Shown: in pieces, positions 35,469 to 37,838 of the stretch | Layout of the letters: the number at the start of each line of letters is the position of its first letter | Position numbering within the stretch: the stretch's first letter is position 1 | Source: Adineta vaga | Lineage: Eukaryota; Animalia; Rotifera | Assembly (NCBI GenBank): GCA_021613535.1 | Contig: CP075497.1 | Location: 4,774,001-4,838,000 of the forward strand | Direction of reading: 5' to 3' | DNA: 64,000 bases | Notes under the pieces: model-generated | Told to the model about the DNA's origin: nothing | Seen by the model: only the letters and a program-made list of their open reading frames with translations | Database searches by the model: none | Program-made: the position numbers and the translations under genes

Positions 35469-36240
35469 TGTAGTTGAGTTCAAAAGAATGTTATTACTAT
35501 AATGAATCGACTGAAAAAGAGAAGAAAAAGAGTAACGTTGCCTAGGACGGACCCTTTCTTTGTTTCAAAGTGAAGCTTACCTGATAGGTTGTTAATACAG
35601 CAATCACTATAGTATGTGCGTGAAGGAATGAACAAATCACAAGAGAAGAAAAGAGGTCACTGGTCGTGTTCTCTGCTACGTGGGTGATTCTTGACTTCTT
35701 ATCAGTTGTTCTAAAGTTTAAATGAGTAATATAGTTTTCGTATCAAAATACTATCTCAGTCAGAGACAAACATCAATGTATTAATAGGATTTCTTGCAAT
35801 GAATCTTATTTGTTTAGAATATAGTTTGAAAATCAAGAGACATTTTAGAATAATAATTGTATCGGATAATCTTGATCCATCCCATAATTATGAATTTTAT
35901 GATCGTCATCGACTTTTCTCATTTAGAATATTGAAATTTCATTTGATTCTCTGATCGATCTATGCGATCTAGTCTAGTTTAATATATTCAAACAAGATTT
36001 TATGGCTATTCTTATCTAAATGTTCCGACTTTGTTAGAATGAAATGGTTTGAAGATGAAAATATAGTTCATTCATCGAATGTGTCATATTCACTAGAGTT
36101 TTGTATCAAATCAATGTCAATAGTACACGTAGCAACACATACACTAATTGATGAATGTCACAAGACAGAAAGATTAGAAAAATAGTTACATCATTTTCTT
36201 AATTCTACCATTTGTTTTCACAATTTATTCTCGAACAAGC

Positions 36241-36703
36241 TAGAATGTTCGACTTGCACAATCAAAATGAAATTATTTCTATTTGATTGTGCAATACAAT
36301 GCACAGGGATGGAGGGTATAAAAGCTCGTGTAAAACAACACATCGTTATGTATTCTAAAGACAGTACGGTCGAGTGTCAATACTTGTTCGTCTTGGAACT
36401 TTCGTTTATTATCAATAATCCTTCGTAGTCTGGAGGCTTTTCTAAGTCTCCTGATACACTTTCCGGTCTTCGGGTGGTACGTTCCAACACGTGTTAAAAT
36501 GTGGGGAAGCCCGGCTGTCTTCTATCGCAAGATGAAGCTAACGGGCCCTACGAGTCATATCACTGGAGGCCCTTTCTTCAAGTAATTACATCAATTATCA
36601 CGATTATTAAAAATGTGTATGATTGATGTATTACTTTGTAGCTAGGGCACTAGTATCATCGTCGAATGTTTACAAGACACGATTTAAAATTCATTTCTAT
36701 TTT
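36241..36703 (+). ncRNA. Candidate structured non-coding RNA of unassigned class (partial RNase P/MRP-like motifs)
   Basis: GC-enriched ORF-less island with nested helices, cUUCGg (36468-73) and GCAA (36527-30) tetraloops, TATAAAA at 36317-23 and T4 at 36700-03. Details in findings. Confidence 0.5.
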
Positions 36704-37838
36704 AGCCTACTATCAATTAGAAAGATGTTACTAATATGTGTATAATATTTTTTTAAAAACCAACAAATTTATTTTTTTTCAGCAACTATATATCACATGA
36801 TATTTACTTTCTTTTCTTCTTCCTCGCAATACGATAACCAACAAAAATTGTAATTTCATCATAACTTTGTATTTCTACGAAAGTTAAAGAATTGATTAAG
36901 TTTTTATTAACAGCTGCAAAGAATGTCAAATAATTATAAGACTGTATCTCAAAACATTCAGTAACATACGACCAACATTTCCTCTCTATATACACTATAC
37001 ATCTGACATAGCATTTTGTTCGAATGTAATGAAGTTATAATTGAATTTGAATTTTTACTTCAAGATAATTGTATCCAATGACATGCTTTTCTTTCGATTT
37101 GTATTCAAAATTTAATCTTTTAATTTCTATCATCCAGTTTCGTTCGATCTCATAGTCGATTGTTTTTATAAATTATTAATCATTTTGAAATAAAGAAAGA
37201 TTCTTATATCTCGTGATAAATCATTTCAGAGATCGATATCATTTTATTTCCTCGTAGAAATTAAGTCAATTGTTCCTAATCATATTTGTCTATCTCTTTG
37301 GTTGAACTAAATTGATTGCGAGATAAAAATCTCAGAGCAAAAGGAATCAATCAATAGTAAAGCACTTTTTTCTCTCTATTCATACACATTTTCCAACAAA
37401 TTCACACATATGGCACTACTACAAATGGGCAAATTCGATTGCTTGCGGCATTAACTGACACATAGACATAGCGAACAGTTTTCTTTCTTTTTTTATGCAT
37501 GTACGCTACTTGATCCACTCGTTGAAGAGCAGAGATATATAGATTGTTTTTCTGGTCGTGTGCGTAAGTACGTTCACTCGTTCTTGTTGCCGCAAAGAAA
37601 AAGTTTGATTAGCTCGCTTGGTTGCACACATTTCTGATAGGAGAAAATTAAGATTACAAGACGAACAAGAATAAGACAAAAAGAAAAGTGGCACCTGGCA
37701 CGTTCATTCAATCGAATATGTTTATATCTTATATGTATGTATGTATGTATGTATTTGTCAAAAGAGCAGAAGAAAAAAAAATACAATAGGCGAAAAAAGA
37801 AAAGAAGAAAACGGCAAACTTATAATAACAAAATGGAG

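Follow-up and report, generated by a model that had tools for sequence, protein, structure and literature searches.

A transcribed, two-copy structured RNA gene with a hairpin intron in Adineta vaga, a bdelloid rotifer

Introduction

The Drosophila locus hsr-omega (93D) is transcribed by RNA polymerase II (Pol II) from a promoter with heat-shock elements and a TATA box, and its RNA, interrupted by one intron, exists in spliced and unspliced forms. The transcripts are 1.2 to >10 kb long, contain tandem repeats, show little sequence conservation, and encode no protein of normal size; they carry a tiny frame without a conserved product. The subject of this article is an RNA gene of the bdelloid rotifer Adineta vaga, located near positions 36345-36803 of a 64,000-nucleotide stretch (the window, G000:C6:4774001-4838000 of a 100.8-Mb, six-contig assembly), between a RUVBL2-type and a TFAP2-type gene that both lie on the - strand, as judged from peptides in the translations. 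With hsr-omega this gene shares a TATA box preceded by a heat-shock-element-like site, a single intron, the coexistence of spliced and unspliced transcripts, and a tiny frame. Unlike hsr-omega, its RNA measures a few hundred nucleotides (nt), has no repeats, is built around a near-invariant, tightly folded core, and bears no sequence similarity to the Drosophila RNA; its induction, moreover, is predicted from motifs.

With moderate confidence, we read the stretch as a gene in its own right, whose product is a structured long non-coding RNA that is new and lineage-specific and would be a functional analogue of hsr-omega, unrelated to it by descent. Bdelloid rotifers are studied for their extreme tolerance of stress and DNA damage, and the literature searched yielded no account of their non-coding RNAs; searches on bdelloid non-coding RNA and long non-coding RNA likewise found no description of the RNA in the window. 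The locus was first singled out by a prediction made from sequence, which proposed an unannotated, structured RNA driven by the TATA box at 36317 and offered two classes for it: (a) an RNA polymerase III (Pol III) type RNA or (b) a divergent RNase P/MRP RNA. The existence of an unannotated, transcribed, structured gene on the + strand, driven by that TATA box, is borne out by the data below, while neither class is.

Transcription and splicing

The stretch is a real, transcribed, two-copy structured RNA gene on the + strand. Transcription is documented by contigs from three independent studies (X1, X5, and X7), all unstranded. The X1 and X7 contigs skip all three introns of the neighboring RUVBL2 gene and the X5 contig skips the first, and the three are therefore RNA. 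Contigs cover 36376-36773 in X7, 36407-36698 and beyond in X1, and 36407-36803 in X5, and none of the three covers 35572-36327. Because variant sites lie at 36397 and 36406, the contig starts at 36407 are not RNA ends. The transcript spans from just below the conserved TATA box to at least 36773-36803, which disposes of the original proposal that it terminates at the T4 run at 36700. It may reach 37080, where a further X1 contig ends (36669-37080, at a lower depth of 16.5, seven differences from the window); this unstranded contig is either an extended 3′ tail or a transcript of its own. The interval 37084-37400 has no RNA cover.

A joint between 36581 and 36642, with GT..AG ends on the + strand, occurs in X1 and X5 beside unspliced contigs in the same runs. 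It marks a partly retained intron close in size to the 54-59-nt introns of RUVBL2, and its GT..AG orientation indicates transcription on the + strand. In X9, which behaves as DNA in that RUVBL2 is unspliced, the sequence is continuous through the hairpin, so that a deletion allele does not account for the joint there. The GT..AG ends are kept in five of the six gene copies described below; the copy L024 lacks the GT, yet keeps the hairpin. To go by contig depths, the RNA may be plentiful in X1 and X5 but scarce in X7, although contig depth is not an expression measure. The share of the stretch covered varies from 0 to 0.6 between runs, which is suggestive only as regards induction by stress.

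The contigs also differ from the window at variant sites that are probably allelic, at 36397, 36406, 36499, and 36557 and at three positions in 36642-36671. X1 contains two versions of 36642-36698 at similar depth, and both haplotypes may be transcribed.

Copies of the gene

A BLAST search with 36300-36710 against the whole genome found one further copy, L002 (G000:C6:~3936100-3936700), which is 81% identical and lies 870 kb away on the same contig. A covariance model built from the core (R1) recovered the window copy and L002 only, giving two copies in total. The copy-number check thus speaks against a dispersed element of the short interspersed (SINE) or miniature inverted-repeat transposable (MITE) type, which the original prediction had named as a possible refutation.

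Outside this genome, two invariant blocks served as exact patterns in a scan of metagenome contigs, which found three distinct AT-rich copies, L024 (truncated at its 5′ end), L026, and L027, the last of which is identical to L028 and L030 across the 624 bases compared around the gene. Two GC-rich bacterial matches in the same scan are due to chance. The sixth copy, L035, was reached by a protein-word search with translated conserved DNA, through a mis-called 'hypothetical protein'; a further word search that started from the reading frame of L024 found nothing. Pattern scans of viral and prokaryotic genome collections gave no match, and so no sign of a bacterial or viral origin. RUVBL2, TFAP2, and the other genes of the window appear on none of the metagenome contigs that carry copies, and the gene is therefore not syntenic. 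A large sacsin-like reading frame adjoining L027 is just 44-60% identical to its best match in the A. vaga genome, so the L027 contig probably comes from a fairly distant relative. Beside this protein neighbor, the RNA is conserved at the level of a small nuclear RNA (snRNA). All comparisons below use six sequences: the window copy, L002, L024, L026, L027, and L035.

Conservation and structure

Conservation is distributed unevenly along the gene (Table 1). Promoter conservation extends over ~120 nt upstream of the transcription start, which presumably lies at about 36345-36350. The following 5′ domain is variable, whereas the core, which opens with UUCGUAG (36422) and closes at the splice donor (36581), shows 85-92% pairwise identity and 93% mean column identity (alignment A6). 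Identity between copies falls to 58-90% in the intron hairpin. The gene also stands out in composition, as first noted: at 36300-36700 the GC content rises to 0.39-0.45, against 0.25-0.30 around it.

The prediction of a structured + strand is confirmed by folding. The segment 36345-36703 folds at -105.8 kcal/mol on the + strand, with a z-score of -5.2 against shuffles (-4.1 on the - strand), and 36345-36675 gives -5.5 on the + strand; taken together, the z-scores range from -1.6 to -5.5. The consensus fold derived from the six-sequence alignment contains 82 pairs, with 96-98% of cells paired, compared with ~40% when the partners are slid. Five pairs are changed on both sides, a count reached by none of 500 shuffles.

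Several of the helices read from the window sequence alone are recovered in this consensus. The hairpin at 36432-36451 is real and shows compensatory changes, and the helix GCCCG/CGGGC with its capped hairpin is invariant; the capping loop reads GAAA in five copies and GCAA in that of the window, both of the GNRA type. Of a helix proposed at 36482-92/36499-508, the inner part recurs in every copy (hairpin H3), and its loop length varies by 4-8 nt, not in threes. The long stem with a GCCCU/AGGGC base is likewise present in all six copies, but the distal part of what had been described as a stem of ~20 bp is the intron. The consensus fold further includes a short hairpin on the UUCG segment and a closing UUCG/CGAA helix (36422-25/36664-67). 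In contrast, the closing helix originally drawn at 36390-404/36663-78 and the TGATAC/GTATCA helix (36452-57/36653-58) are not kept in the other copies, and the proposed TCGTAG/CTACGA pairing is complete in the window copy only, with an A.C mismatch elsewhere.

The core forms a multi-helix junction for which two folds are predicted. In the first (fold A), 36562-36575 pairs with the 36642-36667 segment of exon 2, so that a rod of ~32 bp arises from the intron together with the adjoining ends of both exons. In the second (fold B), seen when the core is folded alone, a long-range helix closes within exon 1. Few columns of the core vary, and among them two pairs of this helix change in concert: one shows C-G for U-A in L026, the other G-C for G-U in both L035 and L024. 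Over 36562-36571, whose partner in fold B is 36465-36473, the two folds exclude each other. In the full-length unspliced RNA, fold A is better by 4-8 kcal/mol in five copies and worse by 1 kcal/mol in L002.

Table 1. Features of the gene and its promoter, in window positions.
Feature	Position	Strand	Description
Heat-shock-element-like site	36227-36251		five in-phase nGAAn/nTTCn units, four of five perfect; starts 90 nt upstream of the TATA box
bZIP (C/EBP)-like site 1, TTGCACAAT	36254-36262		inverted copy of site 2; kept in L026 and L027, one change each in L002 and L035
Conserved spacer motif AATGAAAT	36266-36273	+	between the inverted bZIP-like sites; in alignment A2 and L035
bZIP-like site 2, GATTGTGCAATA	36285-36296 (ATTGTGCAA match 36286-94)		ends ~20 nt upstream of the TATA box
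TATA box	36317-36323	+	kept in 5/5 copies with promoter sequence; distance to the core constant at 105-108 nt
Variable 5′ domain	36345-36421	+	~75 nt, 40-50% identity between copies; short conserved GUGUCA-type motif inside
Nearly invariant core, 3′ part of exon 1	36422-36581	+	~160 nt; covered by X1, X5, and X7 RNA contigs
Hairpin H1	36432-36451	+	G-C to A-U compensatory change in two copies, plus G-U/A-U changes; T4-T6 run in the loop
Long-range core helix (fold B)	36465-36484 with 36552-36571	+	18 pairs, 99% of cells paired; seen when the core is folded alone
Hairpin H3	36488-36503	+	helix 36488-92/36499-503 kept in all copies; 3′ strand holds the AUG of the short frame
Short reading frame from AUG 36499	36499-36581	+	28-codon frame, 27 codons of it in exon 1; open, no indels, in all six copies; continuations differ between copies
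Helix H4	36504-36549	+	GGG/CCC and GCCCG/CGGGC (36509-13/36542-46) around a bulged hairpin with GNRA loop (36527-30); pairs invariant
GT..AG intron	36582-36641	+	60 nt; partly retained; makes up the long hairpin's distal ~22 bp
Conserved start of exon 2	36642-36667	+	conservation ends after 36667
Non-conserved 3′ tail	36668-36803	+	contig ends differ between runs

Promoter

Judged by its motifs, the promoter is probably of the mRNA type, recognized by Pol II and stress-inducible, because it combines a heat-shock-element-like site, paired bZIP-like sites, and a TATA box in a layout like that of small heat-shock-protein genes. The TATA box, already identified by the original prediction, is conserved. 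Nowhere else in the 64-kb window does such a heat-shock-element-like site occur. In L026, four perfect nGAAn/nTTCn units adjoin one another at an equivalent distance, whereas the site is degenerate in L035 and weak in L002 and L027. The two inverted bZIP-like sites are the only matches to ATTGTGCAA in the window, and they fit the C/EBP-type consensus.

Two comparisons within the genome bear on this reading. Three small heat-shock-protein loci (L042, L046, L050) have comparable heat-shock elements starting 36-73 nt upstream of their TATA boxes, and the gene's GATTGTGCAAT box, at bZIP-like site 2, is together with a TATA box also found upstream of apparent ordinary protein-coding genes (L012, L013, L015). 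A genome-wide scan for a perfect four-unit heat-shock element with a TATA box returned two sites only, being too strict to calibrate the motif, and no obvious known heat-shock-protein gene lies downstream of either site.

Separately, the locus L041 (G000:C2:15985921-15989009; pattern match 15987421-15987509) has dense heat-shock-element units followed by GGGTATAAAAG, the TATA context of the gene described here. The longest frame starting in the next 300 nt has 35 codons, and L041 may be another heat-shock-type non-coding transcript.

Proposed mechanism

In the model that we propose, Pol II would transcribe the gene from its mRNA-type promoter, with the heat-shock-element-like and paired bZIP-like sites conferring induction by stress. 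During transcription the core helix of fold B could form first, after which pairing with exon 2 (fold A) would extend the intron hairpin into the ~32-bp rod. The spliceosome removes the hairpin intron from part of the molecules, so that folding and splicing together would yield alternative RNA forms, some bearing the long arm and others lacking it. By means of its invariant core, the RNA would act in trans as a protein-binding scaffold or sensor.

The function of the switch between folds A and B is a conjecture. A more elaborate version holds that the core senses temperature, a metabolite, or a protein and that the fold switch decides whether the long arm is kept or spliced, making the RNA a bdelloid-specific, self-regulating stress switch. 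We regard this version as unlikely. If true, it would describe an RNA switch possibly tied to bdelloid tolerance of desiccation and radiation. If induction is true, the gene would offer a compact and tractable stress RNA, with both copies deletable, a core small enough for structure determination, and two competing folds as a directly testable hypothesis.

Several points weigh against reading the gene as a stress-induced, non-coding analogue of hsr-omega. Six sequences with a near-invariant core yield thin covariation, and the alignments that display it are those on which both folds were built. Only two copies, L026 and that of the window, have a strong heat-shock-like site, and induction by stress is predicted from motifs. 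Finally, the conserved short frame makes a coding or dual role compatible with the data.

Alternative explanations

The last of these points is the basis for a coding alternative, in which the transcript would be an mRNA for a conserved micropeptide of ~28 residues, initiated at AUG 36499 behind a structured regulatory leader, or a dual-function RNA of the ENOD40 type. The stretch had been described as free of open reading frames, which is not strictly true. The AUG and frame are kept in six of six copies, with no indel over 84 nt, and the mRNA-type promoter and the intron suit a coding gene. Codons 1-19 contain five variable sites, of which four are synonymous third positions; across the whole frame, however, the variable columns are distributed 4:4:6 over the codon positions. 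Third positions are nearly as fixed as the others, and the constraint therefore acts on the RNA. Each variable site also fits the RNA model, as a loop position or as a G-C/G-U change. Moreover, conservation is just as high in the 150 nt that precede the AUG, and the indels there are not multiples of three. Out-of-frame AUGs precede the AUG by 4-8 nt in three of the six copies (L002, L024, L026). Continuations beyond the junction, read by eye only from a joined exon 1-exon 2 model, are wholly different, ranging from an immediate stop in the window copy to >45 extra codons. Pfam gave no match to the short frame or to the long open frame of the window copy, and the word search found no protein relatives. 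Plant ENOD40 is similarly a highly structured, conserved RNA with a conserved short frame, but it differs in lineage and sequence, and the upstream AUGs of the rotifer gene argue against translation. Translation of the short frame is unlikely in our judgment, and the micropeptide or dual-function gene is unlikely to the same degree.

The intron raises a different possibility, namely that the gene hosts a small RNA, with the 60-nt hairpin intron serving as a (3′-tailed) mirtron or other Dicer substrate and the exons as its carrier. A GT..AG hairpin intron of this size, with ~22 bp, is mirtron-like; its arms are more conserved than its loop, and three of the weak Rfam matches (E 0.3-9) are microRNA (miRNA) precursor models placed on the long hairpin. 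The pattern of conservation points the other way, however, since the exons are the conserved part (85-92% identity in the exon core vs 58-90% in the intron) and the arms are not conserved in the fashion of a miRNA. Candidate seed regions of both arms differ between copies, L027 has an insertion in the 3′ arm, and L024 keeps the hairpin without the GT. The helix also continues into both exons, leaving seven bases 3′ of the duplex. A mirtron host is improbable on these grounds.

An equally improbable alternative treats the RNA as a riboswitch-like aptamer, sensing a ligand or temperature, whose three-way-junction core would control removal of the intron through competing pairings. The two exclusive helices available to 36562-36571, both compatible with the observed variation, are what commends it. 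The core is invariant to the degree seen in aptamers and ends 10 nt before the 5′ splice site, and splicing is partial and differs between runs. Thiamine pyrophosphate (TPP) riboswitches that control splicing (RF00059) offer the closest parallel, as they too place a conserved junction-type core with competing pairings beside a splice site. The gene has, however, no match to the TPP model or to any other known riboswitch class, no ligand or clue to one, and no regulated enzyme gene or other downstream coding gene in view. The 5′ splice site, furthermore, is paired within the intron hairpin in both folds.

The stand-alone structured RNA that we favor fits no Rfam or Pfam family, and by sequence it constitutes a new family. 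Rfam at gathering score gave no match anywhere in the window, and the families named for checking in the original prediction (RNase P, MRP, 7SK, SRP, and telomerase) gave none at E<=10 on 36100-36900. At that E value, 36100-36900, L035, and L002 showed only chance-level matches to miRNA and small RNA models. The model R1 provides a means to find the family elsewhere.

It is very improbable that the RNA is a divergent member of a known essential class not yet seen in the genome, such as 7SK or telomerase RNA. The idea draws on the snRNA-level conservation, on the lack of any match to 7SK models in the whole genome, and on the literature searched, in which no paper reporting a bdelloid telomerase RNA was found. 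7SK (RF00100, RF01052) resembles the RNA in length (~330 nt), strong conservation, and a plausible role as a protein scaffold. The transcribed stretch of the window copy, however, has no GAUC motifs, and so no GAUC hairpin; its 5′ domain is variable, it lacks a Pol III promoter, it contains internal T runs, it is spliced, and it matches neither 7SK model at E<=10 (36100-36900). With respect to telomerase RNA, the telomere repeat of A. vaga is (TGTGGG)n (PMC8494291). No CCCACA-type template was found by eye on the + strand of any copy, and the conserved UGUGGGG has the sense of the G strand. No telomere repeats were seen at four contig starts.

Other RNA classes of this genome provide the standard against which the two classes first proposed can be set. 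RNase P RNA (RF00009) is encoded at G000:C3:9934531-9934851 (139 bits) and RNase MRP RNA (RF00030) at G000:C6:11929900-11930224 (88 bits). At most of the examined MRP, RNase P, and U6 loci, ATTCACCGTT, or a one-mismatch form of it, is followed after ~25 nt by a CAATATATAAG TATA box. This arrangement is absent from both copies of the new gene. A TATA-driven Pol III type-3 small RNA ending at T4 36700, suggested by the presence of a TATA box and that T4 run, is hardly tenable. The gene lacks the ATTCACCGTT box and CAATATATAAG context; T runs, from T4 in the window copy (36438-41, in the loop of H1) to T6 in L002 and L024, occur ~90 nt into the RNA; contigs extend past 36700; and the intron is spliced. 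A Pol II gene of the snRNA type was rejected as well: U2 genes, which are without a TATA box, have in common a GTGAAATGTG..CAGAC-like element located ~50 nt upstream, and the new gene lacks that proximal element.

RNase P and MRP RNAs resemble the new RNA in size, in their multi-helix fold, and in a GNRA-capped helix, but the new RNA has no model match, no conserved P4 pseudoknot, and no conserved CR-I or CR-V, and the true genes have Pol III promoters. The sequence proposed as the 5′ strand of P4 (36321-30) shares bases with the TATA box and so falls outside the transcript, upstream of it. In the paralog L002 this strand is altered, and the suggested CR-IV and CR-V are not conserved there either. 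The repeats proposed as a target-site duplication fare no better, the upstream one lying in the conserved promoter spacer and the downstream one being unconserved. A divergent RNase P/MRP RNA, for which motif resemblance in the single window copy and nothing more can be adduced, or a SINE/MITE, is therefore virtually excluded by genuine RNase P and MRP genes elsewhere, by unconserved P4, CR-IV, and CR-V elements, and by a count of two copies with no conserved terminal duplication.

Other observations

The searches for known RNA classes gave a Pol III and a U2 promoter consensus for the genome as by-products. Several of the MRP, RNase P, and U6 loci (L003, L005, L006-L011) also have AGATGTCGC-like boxes further upstream. 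U2 genes (L019-L023) are clustered, on both strands, at G000:C5:10.91-10.93 Mb and C6:4.52-4.53 Mb.

Genes for SRP RNA (RF00017) were found on C6 (L036, G000:C6:6409298-6409598) and C3 (L037, C3:9626384-9626684), with scores of 220 and 207 bits, and the new gene has no SRP match. The SRP RNA genes occupy two contigs, while both copies of the new gene lie on C6, 870 kb apart.

Upstream of the ortholog on L035, positions 19-133 hold a palindromic repeat of ATAGCCACTTGGCTAT-like units, on both strands of which miRNA precursor models match with a best E of 4e-5, below gathering score. This repeat is probably a MITE-like inverted repeat.

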